Shown here: piece after piece, positions 1,925-48,100 of the stretch | Layout of the letters: each line of letters begins with the position of its first letter | Position numbering within the stretch: position 1 is the stretch's first letter | Assembly (NCBI GenBank): GCA_025786725.1 | Contig: JAHLTZ010000001.1 | Coordinates: 62,001-126,000, forward strand | Length of the DNA: 64,000 nt | Direction: 5' to 3' | Source of the DNA: Syncephalis fuscata S228 | Taxonomy: Eukaryota; Fungi; Zoopagomycota | Translations under genes and position numbers: made by a program | Notes under the pieces: model-generated | Seen by the model: the letters and a program-made list of their open reading frames with translations, nothing else | What the model was told of the DNA's origin: nothing | The model's database searches: none

Positions 1925-4626
1925 ATGAGCTGTGAAAATACTCAAAACGAAACCGTTGTTGCTGACGCCGCACCAGCTGTTGAAACAACTGCTGAGACCG
2001 TTGTTGAAGCCGTTGCCGATGTAACAGTGGAGACCACTCCTGAAGTAGTTGCTCAAGAAGAAGCAGCTACTGAGGCTGAACCAGCTGCCACTACCGAGGT
2101 AGAGGCACCTAAAGAAGAATGCACTGCTGCAGCTGAGCCAGAAGCTGCAGCTCCTGCTGCTGAAGCTACTGAGACAGCTGTAGAAGCTACTGAAGTAGAG
2201 GCTGTGGCCACTGAAGAGGCTACAGCTGAAGAGACAGAAGTTGCTGCTGCTGCCGAGGAAGAAGTGGCAATCGAGGAAGTTGAGGCAGTCGTTAACGGCT
2301 ATTTGCAGAAGCGTGGTCCACGTCCACTTCGCATTTGGAACAAGCGCTACTTTGCTCTACAAGAGGAAGGTATTCCATTGGCCCAGCTTCGTTTGGTGTT
2401 CAAGAAGAACGTGAAGAAGGTTCACACGCCAGCACCACCTACTTCTAATCCACCAGCTGTACCAGAGGCTGACAAGGAGGACGAGGCCCCTAAGGAGACA
2501 CCAACAGCTGAAGATGAAGTTGTTGCCACTGAGGAAGTTGCCGAGGAAGCTCCAGCTGCTGCTGAGGAAGCTCCAGCTGCTGAGGAAGCTAAGACCGAAG
2601 AGGCAGAGGCTGCCGAAGAAGCAACAGAGACTGCTTCAACTGAAGCACCAGTTGTTGTTCAGCCAGTTGATCAATATGAAGCTGTAAATAAGACATTGTT
2701 CACTAACATTGCCCATGCTACCGCTAGCGGTTTCGGTCTACTCTTCTATTTCCGCAATGAAACCGATGGCGTTCCATCCGGTATTATCAACTTGGCCGAT
2801 GTTAAGTCGATCGAATCGGTTAAAGCCAACAAGCCACATGCATTCGCAGTTCGTACCGAAACTCGTGAAGTTGTTGTTGCTGCCCACTCGGCCAAGGAAG
2901 CCAACGGCTGGATCAAGGCCATCCAAGAGCACAAGGATACTGCTCAGGCCAAGATCGAGGAAGTGCAGCAATCCGAAACATTCAAGCAGACTTATCAGCT
3001 ACTTGTTGAACGCAAGGCTTTCGCTAAGACTGTTGTATCTACCTCGGCTGCTGCTACCACTGAAGAAGTGTTGTCCCACAGTGAATCCGAAGCTGAAGTA
3101 GCAAAGGAAGGCACTACTGAAGTTACACCACCCAGCTCCAAGCGTCGTTCATACTTTGGTGTGCTTGACTTTTTGAGCAAAAAGCCTGCTGCTGCTGCTG
3201 CCGCTGCTGCTACTGCTGTCGAAGAGGAAGCTGCCACTGTGACAGAGGAAGTGACTGCTACTGTGGAAGAAGCTGTTACTACTGTTGAAGTTACTACTAC
3301 TGAAGTAACTGAGACTGTAATAACTACCGAAGAAGTAGTTGCTGAAGAGGTGACCAAGTCGTCTTCCAAGCGTGGCTTTGGTTTTGGTGGCATTTTCAAA
3401 GCCAAGACCAAGGCTACTGATGCCGCTGAAGCTGCTACGGAAGAAGCCAGCGCTGTTGTTGCTGCTGTTGAAGACGAAGCAGCAGAGGCTACTGCCGAAG
3501 GTGAGGCCGTTGTAACTGAAGTTACCGAAACTGTTGAAGTTACTGAGGTGACCGAAGTCACTGAAACAGCTGATGCCGCCGCTGAGCAAGCTACTGCAGC
3601 TGTCGATGAAGCCACTGCTCCTCCTAAGAAGGCATTTGCTGGCGTTGGAAAGTTGTTGCGTTCAATGACCACCAAGAAGAAGGCCGAAGCTACTGAAGCT
3701 GTTACTGAGGCCAAGGCCATCACTGAAGAAGCTGTTGCCAGTGAGACTGAGGCAGTTGTTGAAACACTGAGGAAGTTGTAGCTGAAGCTACAGAACAAGG
3801 TGAAGCTGCTGTTGCCGATGCTACAGAAGTTGTAGAGACTACCACCACCACTGTTACTGATGCTGCCGGTGAAACAACAACTACAGTAACTGAAGTATTC
3901 AGCACTACTCGCGAAGGAGCTAAGCGTGTCTTTAAGACCATTTTTGGTCGCAAGCAAAGCGGCGACATCACCGCTGATGCCGAAACAGCCGCTGAAGCTA
4001 GTGAAGTTGCCGAAACCACCGAAGTGACAGCCGAGGCCACCACCGAAGCTGTAGAAGAAACTGAAGCTGCAGCCGCAGATGTTGTCGTCTCTACTGAAGA
4101 AGCTACAACAACAACAGCTGAAGTTGAAAGCACTACCGAAGCCGCAGAGTCCATTGACCGTGCACAATCTCCACTTGCTCGTGCCTTCACTGGCATTTTC
4201 CGCAAGCGCACTTCTGTCAAAAATGAAGTCGCTAAAGCTGAAGGTGCTGAAGAGACCGAGACCGTTGAGGAAGAAACCGAAACTGCTACTGCTGAAGCTA
4301 AAGTTTCATCAGAAGAGACCAAGACCGTTGAATCGGCTGCTGAAAAGAAAGTAGCACGCCGTGTTACCATCTTCGGTCGCATCACCAACTTGGTAAATAA
4401 CCTTTCGACCAAAGAAGGCGCAGCTGCTACTGTTGAAGATGCTGCCGCTCCTGCCGAAGGTGCTGCACCAGAAGTGGACACTGTCAACGGCAAATCTGAT
4501 GCTGTTGAAGAGAAGGCTGAAACTACTACCACCGAAGTGACGGAAAAGGTCATCACCACCGAAGAAGTTGTCGAGGAGATCATTGAAGAGACAATCGTTG
4601 CTTCAGAAGTGCAAGCTTCCGCTTAA
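1925..4626 (+). CDS. Glu/Ala/Thr-rich PH-domain protein (Meu6/PH_6-like), ~900 aa, apparent 1-nt frameshift at ~3765
   Basis: Split PH domain: GYLQKRGPRPLRIWNKRYFAL ... LLFYF ... PSGIINLADV ... FAV ... EANGWIKAI. ORF 1925-3781 continues in the -1 frame from 3766 (ACT GAG GAA GTT GTA GCT) with the same composition into ORF 4024-4626. Probable 5'UTR intron 1004-1775. Confidence 0.75.
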
Positions 4627-5382
4627 ACGCTCGAACAAGTACATTACGACGTGTTGACGGCTTCTTTATCATCTTGCATGCTTATTCGTATTATTGCTAT
4701 ATTCTTTTCACGCCTATCTTCCTCTGCCAGACCCCCATTGTTGGCTGGTGGCTGTCGTGTATTCCACGACATCGTCTTTCTTTATAGATTGGGCGTGCGC
4801 GATCATATAGCTTTACTTTTGGTGTCGTTTCATATTGGCAGCTGTGCTTAATGAGCTCAGCTTGCTAAAACTTATCTTCTACTTTCTCAATTACTCGATC
4901 ACTCGCTCCTTACCTCGCTCTTACACGCGTTCTATTCGTTTTAACTTTGCAGTTCTATCGCTTATCCTATATGCATACCTATGCACGCGCGCGTATATCA
5001 TTGTTTTACTGTTGTAAAGCTTCCGGTCATGGAATGCTGCGCGAACGGATGCCTATCCAGTAGGTGTTTATAAGCGTGGAACATCTTAATGTGTACTACG
5101 CCTAGTTCGTGATCCACAATAGATAGAACACATTTGTCTTTTTGTTGTTTCTTTATACAATCCTATTCATTCGCTGCTGCCTATGTGTGCATGCGTTCAG
5201 TAATCGATTTCTGCGTATTCTTTATTAATAAATAATAGTGTTATAGCGGTATTCAATTAGTTTACATGTATGTTTAACATAAAGTCTTTGAAAAAAAGTA
5301 TAATGTTGTACCTTGATGTGGTGTCTGTAATGCAAATACTACACGTACCATTACTATTACTACAATTTATAACTAATTAGTG

Positions 5383-5490
5383 TGATTTGGGGGTCAAATG
5401 ACTAAATTTAATAACATTCGCGTAGTTGAACTAGAATTTCAATCTATTGAACATGGGGACAAGTGGTGAGTTTGATTTAATCGTCACATC
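5383..5490. repeat. Dispersed repeat, copy A (copy B at 47366-47475)
   Basis: tgatttgggggtcaaatgactaaattta...attgaacatggggacaagtggtgagttt aligns by eye with 47366 tgatttggtggtcaaatgattacattta...attgagcacggggacaagtggcgagttt. Confidence 0.8.
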
Positions 5491-6446
5491 AACATCTAAT
5501 GACGCCCAATCTATTGAACATGATGATGGGTGGTGAGTGACATCAGTCATCAAATACTCGTCATCATAGATTCGTTATCCAGTATGCATATATCCACCAT
5601 TTACCTATATCATTCCCATTCTGTCCCACACTACTATGTATCATTTATACATACTAAACGCATTCTAATATTTATATGTCCCAATATACTTTACTCATTC
5701 TCCACATTGCATTATATGCAATATACTTTAACATTATTTTATATATTTTCTTACCATATATTCATCATTTTATATACTATTCTATACTCGCTTAGCCTTC
5801 CTCTATCCAAAACTGCTTTTATTTTTGTTCTAGCTTTATCATTAGTAAATGTCGACTAATGTCGGTCATTTACTCATGCATATATGCTCAATGACTTTAC
5901 TAATTTTATTCGTATACATTAACTCGTTTATTGATAGATTCATATCTAGTTATATATGGTAATAAATGTACTTTAGTTAAAACTGCTATTTGCTTGCTAA
6001 TTGTTTTATTAGTTGTAAATATTGACTTATTTTGCTCATTAAGCCAATACGCAACGTGTCATTCAATTTTTTTTAAATTTTACTTGTTTTTTATTTATAA
6101 TCCATTGTTATTTAGAAGTCAAATAGCTAAACTTGACAATATTCACTCAACTGAACATGATACCGAGTGATAGGTGACATTAGCCATTAAAATGTTGCAA
6201 CGGCATATTTAAATTTAAATTGAATTGAAACCAAGTCGTCTCAAATCATATGTGAATATAATAACAAATCACGTAATGAATTCAATAAACAAAGCTTTGC
6301 TGATTACGGTGCAGTCTGTGTTTTTAATCTCTACCAATCTATCGACGTGTATACTTGTCTTTACTTACTAGCATATGATAACCAAGCCTGTCAGACATTG
6401 CTCTATTATACTAGTTTATTCCACTTGAAGATTCTAAAAACTAGCT

Positions 6447-9400
6447 ATGGGTAGAACTACCCATCATGGCAGCGATTCCATCACTGCCCGACGTATTATT
6501 AAACGTACTACGGCATTTATGTCATTAAATGAGCCTGAAGAATCGGATGAACAGGCAGATATAGCAGTCCAGGCCAGATCAGCACTTGATCCACTGATGG
6601 ATTTGTATCAACGGGCGTTACTCTGCCAACAGCGACATCAATTAGCCAACGCAGTCCAATTCTATGAACAAGCGATGAATCTACTATTGATGCGACAAAT
6701 GAATGTTGATTCCGACCATTCAAGTTCGGGTACTGATTCGGATAGCGATACCGACTCTTCAGACGATAGCGAAGAGGAAGACGATGAAGACGAAGAGGAA
6801 GGAAGTGAACAGGAACATGATCATAACGAAGTAGCCGGTGTAGTCGATACTAGTGAAAACAACAACAATAACAGCAATATTATAAATGGAAATGAAATGA
6901 ATGTAGATTTATCAACAGCAACATCTCCACAATCATCCCATGACCTCGATCCATCCAGTATCAAAACATCGAATATTGGTAATAACACTGCAATGGATAT
7001 GACAACAGAACGAGATTTAAACTCTTTATCGCCCATTGCATCACCAGTACTCAATAACGAACAGGATCATACTATGAAAGCTATGACACCTGACGGCAAT
7101 GATACAAATAGCACGGATATAGAAGGTGAATCTGAAACTATAGTAGATACTAAACAAGTAAAATCACCTTCACCTTGTCCTTCCCAATCATCAACGTCAC
7201 CAAAGCCAAAATCACTGCCTCGATCACGTCGTTGTAGTACAACTAGTCAAAAAAACACGTCTAAAGAGGAAAAGATATCTGCGGCCACTGAACAAGCTAT
7301 AATAGTAATGGTCTAATGAATCACTCTAGTAATTGTACTAATAATTATATTATACTCGCTGTCTTGCAGATGTTTATTGATGGATCTGAAGAGTTACGTA
7401 AATCGCGTGATCAACTCTGCTTTCTTATCCTAGCAAACTTTTCTCGATTACTCGCTTTACCCAATGTTGAATGGACAAATCCACCACGCGCTCTTAATTA
7501 CTTATCAAAAGTAAGCTAATATTATCTAATATCATACATATCCTAGTTTATGCTATTAAATATGATAAATAGGCTGTTCAATTAGATGCTACCAATACGG
7601 CAGTGTGGTGTCAATTAGCAAATGTAGCACGGCAGTGTCAACAGACAGCATTAACTTTACACGCTTTTGAACAAGGCTTATTAACAAAACTTTCTATGAA
7701 ACGTGGTCATCCAAATCCATCACCACTACCATCTATTCATTCAGTAAACAGCGATAGTATAAAATATATATATTCTACTGAATCAACATCGAAAAATTGG
7801 ATAGAACAGATTACTCGATTTACGCCACAAACTTGGGAATGTTTACTTGGTTTATGCGAAGTAATTAACTAGTACTGAATAATCAATATACATCACTAAT
7901 AGATATATAACTAGCAATTATTTGAACAAGGCGATATTTACAGCTGTCAACAGTTAATTGGACCTATTCTCGAGGTCTATCCTAATATTCAAATTCGTCC
8001 TGAATTGAAACATTATATGCATAAACTGCATCAAATTAATACTGAAAAGGATAAACAGTTACGCGATTTAAATGCAACATGGATGGTTGAATCAAGCAAT
8101 CTATCTAAAAAGCTATTAGATACAGATACAGATATAAATACAGATACAGATATAGATACAAGTAATGATACTGAATAACTAGTATATAATGTAGCTAATA
8201 TAGTATTATACCAGATATATGGTCGCCAATGGCTCACACGTTAACGCGGCCCACCTGGGCAGCATTAGGCAAAGCTATCGGACAAATGATTGAAGTAACT
8301 GAACCACCGTATGTAAAATTACTACAATAATCAATATCTAAACTATTTATTGCCTATAGTGAAGGTAACAGTGACGATGACGATGACGATGACGATGAAC
8401 AGCATCCATTATTACTATCTGGTCTTTCATTTACACCACTGGTACCATTCTATCATCGAAAATTAACCATTAATCCCAAGTTTCCATCAACTATTCGATC
8501 TCCTTCGATGCAAATACAAACAACAGCCATTCTATCGATTGAAGAAAATAGCAGCAATGTCAATAGCAGTAACAATAGTCAGAATCATGCAATGGATACA
8601 GAGCTTCAATCACCTATTCATAGTAAACGTGATCGAAGTGAAGTATCAGCCGATGAAGACGAAGAAGAGGAGGAGGAGGAGGAGGAGGAAGTGAACCAAG
8701 TATCTATTAGGTAATGATTTTATATGAATAGCACTATTAAGTATAATGTTAATGAATGTTAATGAATGTTAATTATAGATCATCAAAACGTGTACGCAAT
8801 AAACTTGATCAACAAGAGCAAGAACAATTAAAGCGACGTCAGAATATGACAGTATTTGTTAAACAGGTTGAACGTGTGGTTCATACGCTTGGATGGTCAC
8901 TTATTACCAATGATACACGTACAATGAATGAAGATGAAGATAATTTTAGTATGGATGATCAATTAGGACGGCATCTTACATTATGTTCATCTTCATTATC
9001 AAATAGTGATACATTAACATTTCGGTAAGTAAATTAATTAACCATTAATTAACCTTTAATTAACTTTAATAACTATTTGATTAGATTATCGTCATCTCAA
9101 CAAATACCATCTTCATTTCCTTTAAGTACTCTACCCCCTACTATTGATCCTTTGTTTGGTGATCGACAGCTACTCTTAGAGCATATTCAATGGCTTAATA
9201 CCGTTAATTCTGGTGCATTAGATATGGGCCATTGGTTTATTATTTGTTTATTTTCTGATAATTGCCCATGCTCAATACCACACAAGTCATTGCATCAATG
9301 TCGATGGCCAGATGAATTACGCGAAATAGTGGCAAAGTTTCTGTTAAAGATTGATATTACTGTTTATATGTCGACATTATCATCATTATCTATGGATACG

Positions 9401-38519: not shown

Positions 38520-39463
38520 GAGTGGGTTGGGTTCTTATCATCTGTATTCAATGTACTTTCATTGTTCTATTTTGAACTGCATGCAGTGCTACCGTATATG
38601 TTCTCGGCAGTTAGCACATTGCAACTCGACAACTCAGCAACATAAATAAATTCAGTAGAACCACTAGGATGCTGTTTTATATTTATTTGTATTTTTAATG
38701 AATGACGGTACTGTTTATATGTTACTAAGTCTCATGTGCCATAGATTCATTGCATTTGACCAGTAATTGTTGCTATATAGTAGTTTGATAACCATTTACT
38801 TGTGTGTACATATTATCATTGTCACCTGATTTGTGTTAACATATGAACATATTACAATTAGTTACACTCGATACAGCTACAGCCATATTATACACTTTAA
38901 CAATAATATAAGTAGTTTATTTAGTTTATTGCTTTGTGTATTTACATTGTTGCTATTACACCAGCATGTGTGTGTTATTTAAAGTCTAATTTATTTTAAG
39001 TTTATGAACCCTGTTGTGTATTTATAAGTTAAATAACATTTATTAATCACATTATAGCTTCAACATTAATATTCGTATAAATCATTTGTCTATTCTTTCT
39101 TTTCTACGCTATTCTATATTCTACTAACTAGTTATGTTTTATTAACAAATTATATTTTATTGTTGGCTATGTTCTTTGAAGATTTCTATCTGGTTCATTT
39201 AATATACAATATACCATACTTTATTTCTAACATTCACACACTTTATTTGTCTATTCAGCTGTATTTATATCTCTTTATCAGCTTACAACTACATCTCCAG
39301 TATAAATGGACAGATAGAGCCAACGGATATCAAATAAGCACACAATCTACATTGAATCATGTCTCTTTTGATGATGATAGCCCAGTACAACAAAGTGTAG
39401 TTGATTTTATTATTGCTATTTCACCTTGTTCATTTACAATTTACACTCTTTAAATTCATCAGT

Positions 39464-39974
39464 ATGTCTCTTCCAGATGCAGCACTTCACAAGGTAAGCC
39501 TTTTCACTAGGCGCGATTCACCTAGAGACACTGCAATCTCTAAATCATACTGCTCTTTTACTGATTACTCGCTTGTTTAGGTGCTGGTAGCTATGCAGCA
39601 GATGCAGATAAAGCTACAAGATGACCAGCGTGAACTGTCCAAAGTAACAGCCCAGGTACAAAAATGCGAGCGTGAACAGCGCACCTCTGCAGTAGTCAGC
39701 CGGGAACTGGATACACTAACTGATGACGTACGCGTCTACAAAAGCATAGGCAAAATGTAGGCTACAAAGGGGTGAACCGTCTATTTGCCAGCTAATATCA
39801 ATGGTGTTTATTAGGTTCATGCTAAGCGATCTGCCAACCATGAAGAAAGAAGTATCGACTCGGGGCAAAGAGTCGGGAGAACAAGCTAAAGTGCTTGAAA
39901 AGAAGCGAGCCTATTTGGAACGCAACGTTAAGGAAATCACCGCAAATCTACGAGAGATTACACCACGCGCCTAG
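39464..39974 (+). CDS. PFD1: Prefoldin subunit 1 (3 exons; absent from the ORF track)
   Basis: Spliced product MSLPDAALHKVLVAMQQMQIKLQ...ELDTLTDDVRVYKSIGKMFMLSD...LEKKRAYLERNVKEITANLREI. Contains the beta-prefoldin YxSxGKMF motif. Confidence 0.9.
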
Positions 39975-40364
39975 TGTCCTTTGATTGTGCCATTGTGCAG
40001 TCTATAGAAGATGCTGCATAAAATAAAGCAAAATACAATGACATCAAATGCGGGTTTGCCAAAAATTGTACGACAATGATTACTAGGAAGCATCTTTATC
40101 TTATTGACAATGACGCACAATGTGGATTGTTTGACGCTAAACGTTGCCAATGTTTATTGGCTTACACAATAGTATTATTTTTATGGCCAAATACACTAAT
40201 ACAATATAAATACAATACGTTTTCTCTTTTTCTCTCTTCTTATAATATATACCCACGCACACAGACTAACTCGCAGGCACTACGCTACTTTTCTTGTTAA
40301 AGTTATATTTTGTATGCAATCACTAGCATTTACCTCATCGTATTGACTTATTTTGTTGGCTGGC

Positions 40365-43017
40365 ATGTCTTCGCAACTCCTAAATCGTCCTGGCTATGCT
40401 AAAATAGGCAAAGCTGGCCATGTAATAGCCAACCACTTCAAACTGAACAGCATACCTTTGGACGACCTGATTCATTTAAACGTCAAGATCACTCTTAACA
40501 ATAAAGAGCACAAGAATAAAGATGTAAATAGACAGGTTATCGAGCAGCTACATGTGCTGCACCGTGACAAGTTAGGCAAGGCGTACTTGGCGTATGATGG
40601 CGCATTCAGTGCATTTTCACTACATCCAATGGCAGCAGGTGATTTGCTACGTGTTGACGTTTTATTACCAGAATCGGATGGCAACAATAGCAGTGAAAGA
40701 ATACCGCGTACCTTCGTAGTAACACTTCGTAAAGCAGGCGTCGCCAACATGTCATTAATTGATGCTTATTATTCAGGCGAAATGCGTGATCAGCAGGCAC
40801 TTCTTTTGCCTATTACTGCCTTGGAGGTCATATTCCGTCACATGGTGGCAGGTCGGTTTATATCAATTGGCCAATCACTTTATACGGGCGAGAATTCAAA
40901 GCTTTTACCAGGTGGTTTAGAGGCGTGGCGTGGTTATTTTATGTCGGTACGTGTGGGTGAAACCGGTCTCATGCTAAACATCGATACTGCAACCAGCGCT
41001 TTTTACCGCCAAGGATCGCTGATTCAATTTGTTGCCGATGCGCTTTATGTCAATGGACCTGAAAGAATAGCAAGCAGACTAAACAATAACTCAATCAAAG
41101 AACTGGAACGTCATCTTAAAGGATTAAAAGTTCATGTAACTCACCGACAAGGATTTAAGCCGCGCTATGGAATTCAAAAGTTGACGCGAAAGTCAGCAGA
41201 AGACACAGTATTCACAATTGCCGATACTGGAGAAAGAATCAATGTAGCAAATTACTTCCAAACACGATACAACTATCGATTAAGATTTCCACAGTTGCCA
41301 TGCATGTAAGATATATAGCCATTGTTAAATAGTTGATGCCAATACAGTTTATTATTTTATAGTGTTACAAGCAAAGGAACAACATTCCCAATGGAAGTTT
41401 GTGTGATTGAGCCTAATCAACACTTTAGAGGCCAGTTGGCTGACAAGCAGTTGGCTGACATGATAAAATACGCAGCTGAGCCACCAGAGAAACGACGTAA
41501 TAAAATCAATGACTGCCACGATATTTTAGACTTTGTCAACGACAATACGCTAAATCATTTTGGCATCAGTGTCGATCCAAACATGGTCACGGTCCGTAGT
41601 CGACAATTAGAAGCGCCACGTATTGAATATAACCGATCCACTGGTCGAGATACCATAGTTACGCCAAGGGACGGTCAATGGCCGTTACGAGGTAAACGCT
41701 TACTCGCACCAGTGACTATTAGTTCGTGGGCTGTAATTGCATTCACGCAAGAAAGATTCCTTCCATGTCGCAAAATACAGAATTGCTTCGAGTTTATGGC
41801 ATCCAAGTTTACCGAGAAAGGTATGAATGTAGTTGCAAGAGACCCGCCTGTTATCTATGGCAATATACACGGAGATCCTGCCAAAATACTTCAACAAGCA
41901 GCTGTATTGGCCAAGTCAAAGTATAAGGCACCACCACAAGTTATTTTTGCCCTTCTTCCAAACAATATTGGGTTTTACGGTAAACTTAAAAAGGTAGCTG
42001 AGACACAAATGGGTATTATTACGCAAGGCATGAGTATTGGCAAGCTTGAACGTCTTAACCATACAGTAAGTAAACAATAACAACTATTACTATTATTTAT
42101 CAGATTGATACCTACCTAATACTACTATAGTACTGCGAGAATATGAGCCTTAAAGTAAATGTAAAGCTCGGTGGTGCAAATAGTAAGCTAGTTGATCGAT
42201 CAATTCCAATGATCACCAATGTACCAACCATTGTTATGGGTGCCGATTTGTACCATCCAACTGGCGCCAAACACGATCCAAGCCGTCCTTCAATTGCTGC
42301 TGTTTGCGGCTCACTTGATCCGCAGCTATCCAATTATGATGGCACCTATCGTGCCCAGGATAGTCATGAAGATATTATATTTGATCTATGTCCAATGACC
42401 AAGGAAATTATTAGTAATTTCCATCGTAGATCAGGTACTTATCCTCAGCGTATTATTTTCTATCGAGACGGTGTCTCAGATGGACAATTCCAGCGTGTAT
42501 TTGAAGTAGAATTGAAAGCTATTAAGAAGGCTTGTCGGGAACTTAGCCCTAAGTATAATCCAAAATTAACATTTATTGTTGCAAAGAAACGACACCATAC
42601 ACGTCTGTTCCCAGCTCAAGCCGGTCCACAAGCAACCGATCGTTCTGGCAACTGTAAACCAGGCACGGTAGTTGATCGTGATATTACCGATCCTTGCCTT
42701 TACGACTTTTTCCTTCAAGCGCATGCCGGTATTCAAGGCACTTGTAGTCCTGTGCACTATGTTGTTCTCCACGATGAAAATAATTTAGGACCAGATGTTG
42801 TGCAAGACATGACAAATCGTCTAAGCTACACATATTCACGCTGTCTCGTAGTGTCAGTCTTGTTCCATCCGTTTACTGGGCTCATGTGTTGGCAGACCGT
42901 GCCCGTCACTATATAAATAATGACCAGGCAAGCGATACAGCGAGTTCAGTTTCGCCGTGTCAACCTACGACTATGCCCCATTTAAACAGTTTACGTACTG
43001 TGCTTTTCTACTCTTAA
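40365..43017 (+). CDS. AGO: Argonaute (N-L1-PAZ-MID-PIWI); introns 41306-41362 and 42067-42130; apparent 1-nt frameshift at ~42846
   Basis: RPGY..ANHF, GLEAWRGYFMSVR, LNID, LKGLKVHVTH, YF..RY..RLRFPQLPC, PMEVC, LKVNVKLGG, MGAD, YRDGVSDGQF, KKRHHTRLF, PGTVVD, HAGIQGT. The -1 frame resumes RSVSLVPSVYWAHVLADRARHY...LFYS*. Confidence 0.96.
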
Positions 43018-43941
43018 TGGTCTATTGAGACAACTGACTTGCTTATAACCATTCATTAACTATTTTGCAAGTTGCCACTGCTTTCATTGATCATTAAATC
43101 ACTGCTTATTGTGATTGTTTTATTTGTAATGTGTTTGCTTAATTGATTGTATAAACTAACAAACATTTGCTTATTCATAGCAGCATCAACAGACCACCAT
43201 TTATTAGGATCTATGTAAACTATTCTAGAGTTGATTGATATATATATATCATTATTATGTAAATGTAATTGTTATTTATCTACCAACTAAAGCAATACAA
43301 TGTTTAGATAATCTATTATTTAATTCTAAATAGCCATATAAAAGCATGCAGTTATTTATTAAACAGTATAGCTATCTCGTTATATACAATTCATATAACC
43401 ATAATAATGAATCAATATGTGCAGCTGTAAATACATACAAACAATATAGCCAATCAATAAATATAATTGTTATGCCATTCATTCTATCTATTATAACAAT
43501 ATTTTTATTTGTATTCTTATTTCTTTAACTTTATTTTATTCATCCTCCCATTGCATATCATTGTATTGTCTATTGATTACACATTGTTTATAATCTATCT
43601 TATTATACTAGCTATATTTATTATATATTTAATTTACTCAATCTATTGTGTTTACTAGGTTGTATATTCTTTTGTTTATTCATCCATTTCATGTTCTATT
43701 AACTACTTTTATTAATAAAGCGTATTTTTATATGTAGTTATATTACTTGTAGATTCAATCTGGTTTATTTAACATATGCACATATACATACTATGCTTTG
43801 TCATTAATAGTACTATATTTTATTTGACTATTTATTTGTATTTATAGCACTTTACATTCTAATAAAACAAAAGAGATATACTTATAACATTTTTCCAATA
43901 TAAATATATAAAGCATATGTATAGTAAAATAAATATATCAA

Positions 43942-44662
43942 TATGAGAACGCATACGGCTATTGCATAACATCATCTACGTTTGCAAAAACCATAGGATA
44001 TTCAATAAACTGTAGTAACATTTACATACAAAACTTGATAAATGACACGCGTTTAAACTGTAAACTGGTCGAGTATACAATCAAGAATGCTTAACCAAAA
44101 CCAGTCAAGTATTGATTCAGGACAAATAGTGCAATATCAAAAAGGCCAATTCAGCACCATACAGTCTTCACTGGCCACATACAGAAAAGTACTGATGAGT
44201 GAGATTGTTCAAGCAGTGGAAGAGAATAAAGAGACAATCAGCAGAGATATAGCCACCACAATCACTATATACTTTGTTTTACTATAGATCACTATCGTAG
44301 ATCATACTTAACAGCTTATATAGTCTCAAAGTGTTGACTGCACTATTGCTATTGAAATTGCAAAGCTATTGCCAGATGACTTACAATAACAATTGATGGC
44401 AAAATCAAAGTATACAGCAATATTTTACATAATATATTCAACATAGCATAACAACAATCCAAAATGCACTTAATATGTCAATAAAAGTGCCATCATTGAT
44501 TGGAGTGATGATGAATTGCAAAAAGGTCAGATTACAAAAGAGCAATGCAAGGATATAGTGTAAATAACATATATAAAGTGTACAAGTATATGCAATGGGT
44601 ATATGTTGTCAAGTGTAAAGAAAGAGAAAGGGAAATATGATGACGTAGATTGTGAGATGTGA
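43942..44662 (+). pseudogene. Possible degraded coding relic
   Basis: Coding-like frames (SSLATYRKVLMSEIVQAVEENK; IAIEIAKLLPDDLQ*QLMAK; DWSDDELQKGQITKEQCKDIV*) interrupted by stops. Family not recognised. Confidence 0.3.
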
Positions 44663-45156
44663 GCCTGTCAGTCAATATTTATAAACAAAAAGTTTAATTG
44701 ATTAATAAATGGAGTGTGAAATAATAAAAGTCAATTTACCCAACATGTCGGTACATCATAGAACAACAAGTGAAGCAATAATGCATTGAGAATAAAAGTC
44801 ATTTTACCCCCAAAACTACTCATTATCATAGAATATGTTATTAAAAAATAAAATAAAAATACTATTTTTATTTTACAAATACTTTAACGTTACATTTATT
44901 ATAGTATATTCTGCTTAATGACACAATGGCTCAGTCCTGAGTTGTATAGCAAACTATTGCGCATATCGGTATTTTATATAGTCACTTGGCTAAGCATGCA
45001 TGTGCCACATCATACTGGTTTTCATGTTGGCCTTTGCAGTCGATATGTTACGTGTTTATTCCTGTTTTTACTTCATAGCTTTAACGGACTTTGTAATGTA
45101 ATATAACAACGTGTATTTTATTTTATTTAGTAGCATTGAAACTCAATCGGTGAATT

Positions 45157-46546
45157 ATGTTATAGACCATATTTCTAAAGAAAAGTAGTCATTTTTATTT
45201 AACTAATACAGTAATAAATTGTGTGGATCGACTGATTTAATTGTGTGCGAATGGCAAGAATATTGGGGGAAAGCAAAATACCTGCTAGACCCTGACAATA
45301 TTGATAGCATCGGAAAGAGCCGCTATTATAGTGGTACAACTGATTAAGAATGGTTGCATTTGGCTATGTTTCAGTTGATTGGCCAATTGATTCAACTAGC
45401 CAGTTAGATATGCTGATTATGCGCGGAAATGACCGGCAAATGGAAGGCAAAAAGTGATCGAATATGGAAATAAGGAAGGATTATAATCCAATTACTAATA
45501 AGATGGTATCTGCATTAGGTTTCAGTCGTTGCAATACACCAATGAACATCCACATACTATTTACCAATATTGTCTATTCTAATTGGTAAATATGTTTTGA
45601 AGTTTATAAGGTTGTGTTGAGTTACTTTTGCTCATTACTTCGCCTTCTCCTGTTTCTAGTTGTTAATGTGCTGTAAACCGTTTGTTAATGGTTAGCATTA
45701 AATCTAGTAGTTACATCCAGTGGTGTGGGGTCCCTTGTTGGTTGATCACGATATACTGTGTTCTTGCTTTTGAGCTGTGTTGAATGTGCAATACAGTATT
45801 TGCAGACTGCTGTATTATACTGGCTCAACAATTATATGGCTGCCCGTAATAGGCGGCTGTATACTAGTGTAGTGCGGAGATATGTGGGATGCTGGAGCGT
45901 GCAGTGATAGGACATAAGTCGGTATTGCTGCACGCTCTCTCATGGGGGACGCTAGGGCGCACAGTATTAGCTTAATACTGCTCTATGCTCCCTCCTGTAA
46001 AGGCTAGAGCGCGCAGTAACAGTATTTAGCAAGTCAGTTATTGCTGTGTGTTTCCCTCATATGGATGCGGCGACCTGTGATAGGTGGCCATATGTTAGTG
46101 CTCACTTGTTTGCAACGCGCGCTGGAGGTGTGTTGGTAGTGTTCAACTTGCTGAACACTGCCATCACACACTAGACTAGGTGTGATATGTGAGCATCTAT
46201 AATAGATGAGCATGTATCATACTGTTTACTTGTGGGCATTATTAAACGACTGCAGTGTGGCACTAGTCGACATGTTGTTTAATTTTTAACTACCGTCTTG
46301 GAAAAACATTATGACGATTGCTACTGACCTGGACTAGCGACCGAAAATTAAGCAATATCTCTACGGTTGATTACATCGTAGCGTAGACTAGTTGTTATAC
46401 TGTAATCTTTTATAGTGCAGCAGTATATGGCAATATGTTGTTTAGTATAATATGATGTAGTATTATATGCGTTTGGCTTATACATCAGCTACAATTGGGT
46501 GAACCAGTAGTTTAGTGCTGCTTATAGCCACGTAACACTATGACAT
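45157..46546 (+). ncRNA. Candidate large structured non-coding RNA (identity unknown)
   Basis: No ORF of 60 aa or more, at least ten hairpins or long-range helices with G-U pairs on the + strand, and complementary ends (45157-45165 with 46538-46546). Confidence 0.55.
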
Positions 46547-47365
46547 TTATTAAGCAGCATCGCCATCTTGATGGTGGCTAGTAAAAGCTATGTGCTTCTG
46601 ACAAATGTTATTTCGATTAAGTCGTATTATTGTCGGTACTCCAGGTGGACGCATAGTTTCTGTATTAGTTACTATCTTGTTTAACAACATTTCTAGTTTA
46701 TTTGTATAACAGATAACAACAATACACAAACAACTACACTCGTGTACACTATAAACTATACGCAAGGAACAATCAACTAGATGTAGGTGCTTATTACTAC
46801 TAAACAATACTAACGCACTTTTATTATAGCTATTCGAGCATTGGTGCCGGATCAACAAGTATATCTGACTGCATCTGTTATCGGGCACAAATATTTTGCA
46901 TGCAACTTACAATACCAACTATAGAATTCGTTGGCACAAGCATCGACAACAATACTGTATACTGTCGTTGGTACTATCGTTTGGACTGGATTCTAAATGG
47001 GACATATACTTATTGTTTTATATTACCCAACACTAACTGGCATTGCTATTGCGCATCTGCTAAATGCTTTGGTTTGATTGAAGTGGTGGTAATAAAGAGG
47101 GAGGTGGTGGACATTATACATATATATATTAAATTGGAATGGTAGATTTAATAAAGGAGCGTATGAGGTGTTTGCTGAATCGACATAACACTGTGACTCC
47201 ATTACTAGTTTGTCTAATGTTGTGCTTATTATGTTTAATAAAACTATAATACTGGTACATATATTTAATTAAAGTCATTGATATTTGAATGGCTAGATTA
47301 CAAGTAGCTACATTCAATACTACATCTACGCCAACTATTTTAATAATATTTATTAACATTTAATA

Positions 47366-47475
47366 TGATTTGGTGGTCAAATGATTACATTTAATTATAT
47401 TCGCATAATTGAATTAGATATTCTTTTTATTGAGCACGGGGACAAGTGGCGAGTTTTATTAATAATCAAAATACT
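47366..47475. repeat. Dispersed repeat, copy B (copy A at 5383-5490)
   Basis: Same-orientation diverged copy of 5383-5490. Confidence 0.8.
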
Positions 47476-48100
47476 CATTATTGTATATTCATCTTACTAT
47501 ATAATTTTATATTGTATACTCACCACAAATCATTAATAAAAACGTATATACTTTAATTCATTCTATTCATTGTGCTAATCCAACCTTATATGGTGACTTT
47601 ATTATTTTTATTATGCACTTTCATTTGCCCATTAATTCCGTTCTAACTACATTGTACTATATCAGCCGTGCTTTATCAATAAAAGTATGTATTTGTAATT
47701 AACTATTCTTTTTATGTTTTGATTTAATTCAATTGAACATATATACGCATACTGTAATGTATTGCCAATACTCATTTAAATATATATATCACTATTAATG
47801 TAAAGATACATATCTAGCATAAATATAAAACAAACGAAACAGTATAGATTCAAACGTGCAGAATCCGCATTAAGCTATGCTTCCATTAATGGTCATGTTA
47901 GACTATAATAGTTTTTCTCAAAAGCTGTTGCTCTAGCATTCAATGCACTTTGTAAATAAAGCAAAAACTATTTCTTTTATCTGATACGTATTAGCAAAAG
48001 AATAATGAAGTCCTATAAAATAGCGCAGAGGGTGACGTCAGCACTTTTATTGAGCGTCTTTCTTTTTCTGAACTGTTTATTTGTTTGTGTCAAATCAACC

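Follow-up and report, generated by a model that had tools for sequence, protein, structure and literature searches.

Evidence for a multicopy gene of an abundant, spliced and structured non-coding RNA, usually head-to-head with a Rad53/Chk2-like kinase gene, in Syncephalis fuscata

In the type III toxin-antitoxin systems ToxIN and AbiQ, an RNA binds and neutralises a toxic partner protein; adenovirus VA RNA restrains the kinase PKR as an RNA antitoxin restrains its toxin. Divergent lncRNAs arise from bidirectional promoters, head-to-head with a protein gene. Apart from the ribosomal, spliceosomal, SRP, RNase P/MRP, and telomerase RNAs, fungi are known to have few large structured RNAs on which selection can be demonstrated. 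Fungal telomerase RNAs (TER1 of S. pombe and TER of filamentous fungi) are large, with long helices and a 3′-proximal spliceosomal intron; a pseudoknot and CR4/5 with P6.1 are among the telomerase RNA features (PMC4993307).

The 64,000-nt stretch of Syncephalis fuscata S228 DNA analysed here (contig JAHLTZ010000001.1, positions 62001 to 126000; the window) harbored, between an Argonaute gene and PGI1, a hairpin-dense interval at 45157 to 46546, for which an undescribed large structured RNA of the + strand had been predicted from the letters alone (the original prediction). Such an RNA was borne out as spliced, abundant, covarying, and without an Rfam family: the locus very probably belongs to a multicopy gene family whose product, an abundant non-coding RNA of approximately 1.4–1.5 kb, is spliced and forms long imperfect stems under selection in its middle. 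Rfam 15 gave 0 matches in the window, and the best match at a looser threshold had E 0.54 and 23 bits, against a gathering threshold of 80. As had been noted, no ORF of at least 100 aa was present within 45157–46546. One-base indels were common among the copies, and a protein-coding gene was rejected, no reading frame being conserved among the 40 RNA-gene copies.

The locus proved to be not single-copy but a repeat, one of at least 52 (approximately 60) copies in the S. fuscata genome: the genome search scored 40 loci at 75–94% identity to the window copy, two internal pieces of the RNA gene gave 61–63 candidate genomic matches, and one 21-mer had 52 genome matches versus 0 in the control. A metagenome scan with an invariant 22-mer yielded a single match, which was a chance one in a bacterial glycosyltransferase gene (L041). 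The predicted limits also had to be abandoned, as homology among the copies spanned approximately 44845 to 47400 and abundant RNA extended from approximately 45660 to past 47040. The suggested link to the Argonaute gene failed as well, the recurring neighbour being a kinase gene (see below). A second Argonaute copy shared the left flank and had no RNA copy beside it among the matches listed, so the Argonaute neighbour is regarded as incidental. The search for PGI1 homologues yielded no usable syntenic locus. Several further observations concerned this flank: (i) the Argonaute locus was duplicated (window 38682–44653 versus G000:C350:741465-747413, 87% over the gene and 96% downstream), with an additional Argonaute 3′ fragment at C101:336708-337033; (ii) the last Argonaute exon (window ~42843) displayed an apparent one-base frameshift, which may be an assembly error; and (iii) two intergenic repeats were found, one at 38833–38938 with approximately 40 genome matches and one at 39111–39274 resembling 43667–43851.

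Expression data came from one RNA run (X2, contigs only), together with the DNA run X1 for comparison; X2 was recognized as RNA because the PGI1 intron was removed in its contigs. X2 depth was 880 for PGI1, approximately 125 at 45070–45463, and 3 × 10^4 to 6 × 10^5 at 45661–47039, the last being summed values that were inflated by overlapping short contigs and unfit for ranking. All contig depths are rough; more cautious values were approximately 2000–7000 for single variant contigs (3–8 times PGI1), and the splice junction 46782–46830, absent from X1, had a depth of 25079 over five X2 contigs (approximately 28 times PGI1). The RNA seems to be one of the more strongly expressed transcripts. 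It was composed of (i) exon A, the structured body, at 45658 to 46782 (+), delimited by the X2 depth step and covariation and having an approximate 5′ end; (ii) a spliceosomal GT..AG intron with a TACTAAC branch point at 46783 to 46829 (+), defined by the X2 junction and, like the branch point, shared by most of the 40 copies; and (iii) exon B at 46830 to 47170 (+), whose provisional 3′ end lies past 47040. AATAAA was present at 47150–47155 in many copies, and the RNA perhaps ends near it; a second intron (46859–46924) was spliced in some copies. Transcription of the + strand is fixed by the GT..AG form of intron 46783–46829, and the 5′ end is placed near 45660, rather than at 45157 as originally assumed, because X2 depth steps up there. 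The window copy's base at 46671 was seen in neither X1 nor X2 contigs, while the bases at 46627 and 46875, common to the window copy and its closest paralogue, were compatible with part of the X2 depth. Runs of two other organisms contained only a perfect 150–160-nt piece at depth 4–9, which we infer to be carry-over of the abundant RNA.

Compared to fungal telomerase RNAs, this RNA shared the large size, the long helices, and the 3′-proximal spliceosomal intron, but its second splicing step was completed, its gene had approximately 60 copies, its level was very high, and neither a template nor an Sm site was found. The telomerase-like scaffold originally proposed was abandoned on these grounds, and a telomerase RNA is hardly credible here. 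CCCTAA, as a telomerase template, and the Sm consensus each occurred in 0/40 copies, and there was no conserved single-stranded 1.5-repeat template, conserved short repeats being only paired or AU-rich; the assembly had no TTAGGG arrays. Nor did a 3′ end made by spliceosomal cleavage alone fit the data: the intron was fully spliced (depth 25079) and exon B was abundant, a minor cleaved form being invisible to contigs.

Most helices listed in the original prediction were found again: 11 of the 12 checked formed the stated pairs in the window, with 7/7 to 17/18 of them canonical, the exception lying near 46393–46422, where 4/8 pairs were canonical in the register tried and the bases paired with 46237–46268 instead. 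The helix supposed to close the ends (45157–65/46538–46) paired in the window, but only 82% of its pairs were canonical in other clades, and no change in it was compensatory. Folding was better than that of dinucleotide shuffles and stronger on the + strand, most clearly in the 3′ half: z was −2.6 (+) versus −2.2 (−) at 45210–45890 and −6.0 (+) versus −2.9 (−) at 45870–46560, both against dinucleotide shuffles, and −10.2 (+) versus −1.8 (−) at 46060–46260. The G-U preference claimed for the + strand held for 46005–46600, where pairs predicted on both strands had 101 G-U versus 56 A-C departures and unpaired columns 133 versus 168 (p 5e-5), but not for 45140–45900 (p 0.21).

Covariation among copies was present at 46010–46600 and absent in 45157–45650. 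With extant copies grouped into nine or ten pairs independent in the phylogeny, 34 compensatory changes were counted in 46005–46600, versus 10.9 ± 3.1 when partner columns of equal variability were permuted. A held-out test, in which the structure was taken from the window alone and scored on nine other independent pairs, gave 42 versus 16.2 ± 3.3 at 46010–46600, no excess at 45150–45655 (16 versus 16.2), 4 versus 4.2 at 45658–45900, where little variation meant low power, and little at 46575–47100 (12 versus 9.4).

The consensus displayed long imperfect rods with variable stems and few fixed loops. Five elements were recognized on the + strand downstream of the 5′ motif (see below): (i) an optional two-hairpin domain at 45891 to 46008 (alignment occupancy approximately 35–45%), found in the window's subfamilies and missing from most copies, with a joint 45890–46009 in both RNA and DNA runs; (ii) two hairpins (46128–46169 and 46179–46223) at 46126 to 46223, covarying with 4 and 4–6 compensatory changes over independent pairs; (iii) a long covarying stem at 46236 to 46418 around a hypervariable loop (approximately 46280–46350), its helix 46250–68/46385–405 having 11 compensatory changes; (iv) a long imperfect rod at 46435 to 46560 with a nearly invariant apical UGGGUGAA motif (46496–46503), recognized by conservation among copies, for which one alignment was poorly matched at its ends and lent weak support; and (v) a further rod at 46565 to 46679, beyond the interval first proposed, with 30 bp, 90% canonical, and 5 compensatory changes. 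Several imperfect stems of 18–30 bp, together with the two Argonaute copies of the genome, would suit a polycistronic small-RNA precursor from which Dicer would cut milRNAs or siRNAs, possibly aimed at host genes; yet the stems varied while several loops were fixed, the reverse of a microRNA precursor, the long RNA itself was abundant, and no complementarity to the 5′ half of the kinase was found, and such a precursor is very unlikely.

The most conserved block, a symmetric one, was located at 45392 to 45648, outside the abundant RNA, and contained the longest invariant runs among copies. It carried TTATAA at 45481–86 and 45604–09, an inverted CCAAT pair in its centre (45558–68 and 45582–92), and the motif TTTGCTCA-N-GCCTTC as an inverted pair at 45443–62 (−, degenerate in the window) and 45627–47 (+), so that each strand had TTATAA, 18–19 nt later TTTGCTCA, and then GCCTTC plus pyrimidines. 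The motif TTTGCTCA-N-GCCTTC had 59 genome matches, all in the RNA family and mostly as inverted pairs, versus 0 in the control. Several of the 5′ helices in the original prediction were inverted DNA motifs of this block. Its invariant runs and symmetry make the block rather likely to be a two-way promoter; two alternatives remain, namely an RNA domain cut off and lost from the library, and splice signals around a micro-exon. As with divergent lncRNAs from bidirectional promoters, the RNA lay opposite a protein gene in head-to-head order, a promoter-like block between them being common to both, but here the RNA was the dominant product, its structure was under selection, and it had approximately 60 copies and was kept across species.

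The protein gene was a many-intron kinase gene, which in most fetched copies pointed away from the RNA gene, giving the usual unit kinase ← conserved block → RNA between repeat modules. The kinase-side leader, recognized by copy comparison, was located at 44845 to 45430 (−), with a low, strand-unspecific X2 depth of approximately 125 at 45070–45463, and in most copies the kinase start codon lay approximately 160–220 nt left of 44845–44900. No tblastn match to the kinase was found in the window, and the window copy has lost its kinase. By coordinates, 34/36 close kinase copies had a divergent RNA copy within 4.5 kb, while one was found beside 4/36 weaker kinase matches, this more distant clade being mostly without RNA (32/36). 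Up to 21/59 RNA copies (the window, L024, L034, L037, L038, and L040 being kinase-less) had no kinase among the matches listed, some because of contig ends. A sister clade of approximately 30 kinases (40–45% identity), located on G000 contigs C337, C134, C330, C235, C329, C190 and others, had no RNA copy nearby among the matches listed.

Kinase searches used exons, and protein comparisons used deposited models. In the fold search, the kinase model matched Rad53 and Chk2 over FHA and kinase domains; Pfam detected the kinase domain only and not FHA. The family shared with the checkpoint kinases Rad53, Chk2, and Mek1 an FHA-fold domain followed by a CAMK-type kinase domain, but it displayed approximately 20% identity, more than 60 genomic matches, and a variable catalytic loop (HRD, HGD, HCD); it was not uniformly non-RD, because HRD was intact in several copies and HGD or HCD occurred in others. 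The catalytic loop was split over micro-exons (L009:3950-4150 region). No RNA-binding domain was seen in the kinase, and a single-sequence fold of its N-terminal domain had pLDDT 34 and was unusable. Divergences of kinase and RNA were almost uncorrelated (rho 0.02–0.19, 21 units), identical kinases being paired with RNAs 21–33% apart and the reverse, and partners have therefore been exchanged; RNA divergence was 0.15–0.28 versus 0.36 for the kinase.

The comparison was also applied to kinase homologues of S. pseudoplumigaleata (L042) and S. plumigaleata (L043 and L044), which had gene-free gaps of 2.5–3.9 kb upstream. In L042, the RNA profile had a match on the strand opposite to the kinase (E 3e-5); in S. 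plumigaleata, one gap was 86% identical to the other over 2.5 kb. The 5′ motif at 45662 to 45682 (+), a small hairpin with a CUGUAAAC loop, was kept in the three Syncephalis species. It was first seen by eye, before the matrix test, in which a matrix from S. fuscata 45660–45683 alone had its best site per whole locus 640–830 nt from the kinase start, on the expected strand and after a pyrimidine tract; further short motifs followed in the same order across species. The more distant kinase locus L045 had no 5′ motif. Folding z-scores were weak in S. pseudoplumigaleata and S. plumigaleata, and a small intron-like segment was read from the S. plumigaleata sequence approximately 1.2 kb downstream. 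Judging from these sequences, the head-to-head pairing is kept in three species though the RNA sequence has almost turned over. The cross-species loop CUGUAAA (45670–45676) equals the tRNA-Tyr(GUA) anticodon loop; the stem around it differed from the canonical anticodon stem, and similar CUGUAA or CUGUGA loops recurred downstream.

The 5′ motif opened with GTTAAT in S. fuscata; in S. pseudoplumigaleata and S. plumigaleata its opening bases were GTAAGT or GTCAGT, which resemble a donor site. These bases bear on a reading of the structured body as either a splicing decoy or a large intron that is retained or stable, opening with a 5′ splice site or a site for U1 binding; in yeast, introns that remain stable after excision are known (10.1101/426049). 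A pyrimidine tract with YAG at 45649–59, the YAG being kept in S. fuscata copies, could be its upstream acceptor, and CTAAC, a pyrimidine tract, and TAG lay just upstream in S. pseudoplumigaleata. Such an intron or decoy is nevertheless quite unlikely: besides the GTTAAT of S. fuscata, no joint into 45660 or from 45662 was among those listed (an upstream exon shorter than approximately 20 nt would escape), the abundant form was joined to exon B through the small intron, and local introns used CTAAY 10–20 nt from AG, unlike the 45649–59 site (n = 9).

Repeat comparison defined two boundary modules unrelated to each other: (i) module U at 44392 to 44841 (+), which in intact units lay on the far side of the kinase, approximately 3.1 kb away from the RNA gene, and in the window directly adjoined the leader; and (ii) module M+T, the right boundary, at 47361 to 47682, which was also found alone (window 5378–6192, no RNA or kinase beside it) and in inverted pairs. 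Module U was high-copy in DNA (depth approximately 620) and present in RNA (approximately 6000), and a decayed + strand reading frame at 43942–44662 that overlapped it was not kinase-derived. Unit arrays with approximately 7.6-kb spacing and mixed orientation were present at G000:C224:22000-63000 and C357:5600-23600, and the arrayed units belonged to a subfamily with a different upstream block. At L040:1796-2171, an RNA copy was cut at window position 45531 and joined directly to M+T; the complete RNA was retained, as was the right half of the conserved block.

The scattering of copies, their tandem and inverted arrays, and the high-copy boundary modules would be expected of a non-autonomous transposable element, whether foldback, Mutator-like, Helitron, or retroelement, with a captured kinase, the RNA being its transcript. 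This origin is nonetheless very improbable: there was no terminal inverted repeat (score 41 versus a shuffled maximum of 39), U and M+T were unrelated, unit ends were ragged and mosaic, right ends included among the ragged ones, the introns kept on both strands (RNA gene and kinase) exclude an RNA intermediate, and structural selection was strand-specific. The high copy number that had been associated beforehand with a foldback transposon was indeed found, but a foldback transposon is itself very improbable, the stems being local, covarying, and in favour of G-U on one strand, with no terminal inverted repeat. Retroelements (SINE, LARD, retrozyme) were likewise rejected, as the + strand intron and the kinase introns were kept; hammerhead CTGAnGA occurred in only 6/40 copies, with no ribozyme match. 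DNA-level duplication and conversion, we infer, fit the spread best, and it is probable that the block is a two-way RNA polymerase II promoter and that units have spread and swapped by ectopic recombination and gene conversion, not by transposition.

The combination of fixed loops with variable rods points to protein binding; the rarity of kinases without the RNA, set against the frequency of the RNA without a kinase, points to restraint of the kinase by excess RNA. Acting in trans, the RNA would be a scaffold or decoy for proteins, with a few fixed loops displayed on its variable stems; made in large excess from a promoter shared with the kinase, it would bind and restrain the Rad53/Chk2-like kinases or their pathway across the family. 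By analogy with VA RNA on PKR or an RNA antitoxin on its toxin, a protein-binding RNA that restrains the kinases is tentatively put forward. Against restraint, the apparent dependence of kinase on RNA could follow simply from the shared promoter, and the more distant kinase clade is mostly without RNA (32/36).

The unit and the type III toxin-antitoxin systems ToxIN and AbiQ had in common the linkage of a protein gene to a structured RNA produced in excess, with RNA without protein commoner than protein without RNA, but the unit was eukaryotic, divergent rather than operonic, and contained a kinase instead of an RNase and a 1.4-kb non-repetitive RNA with no cognate co-evolution; partner swapping (rho 0.02–0.19) argues against cognate pairs of that kind. 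With VA RNA and PKR it shared an abundant RNA, imperfect double-stranded stems, and a proposed action on a kinase, but here the RNA was spliced, approximately 10 times longer, and encoded by the host genome beside the kinase, which was of FHA type and without a double-stranded-RNA-binding domain. Somewhat more doubtful than restraint is a job of the RNA's own, as a nuclear or cytoplasmic scaffold or as cargo to the fungal host, with only promoter and amplification shared with the kinase: RNA copies survived without a kinase (the window and the five loci above), diverged less than the kinase (0.15–0.28 versus 0.36), and did not co-evolve with it, but head-to-head pairing was kept in three species despite RNA sequence turnover, and close kinases were nearly always paired with an RNA copy.

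Rfam had no match to the RNA, and the literature searched, from which subscription journals were largely absent, contained no description of the RNA or of the cassette; both appear to be new. The approximately 60 paralogues supply the covariation needed to model the RNA structure. A tombusvirus-like virus has been reported from S. fuscata (PMC7482067), which would be relevant if RNA and kinase act in antiviral or stress signalling. A rather unlikely extension of restraint is a cassette of kinase and RNA antidote, amplifying throughout the genus, whose Rad53/Chk2-type kinase would be deregulated and checked by large structured RNA from the same two-way promoter; if true, the cassette would be a selfish element or a weapon against the fungal host. 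The RNA is tied to checkpoint-type kinases in three species of mycoparasite, and a Chk2-like kinase controlled directly by a dedicated RNA, or a eukaryotic RNA antidote, would, if true, be a new mechanism.
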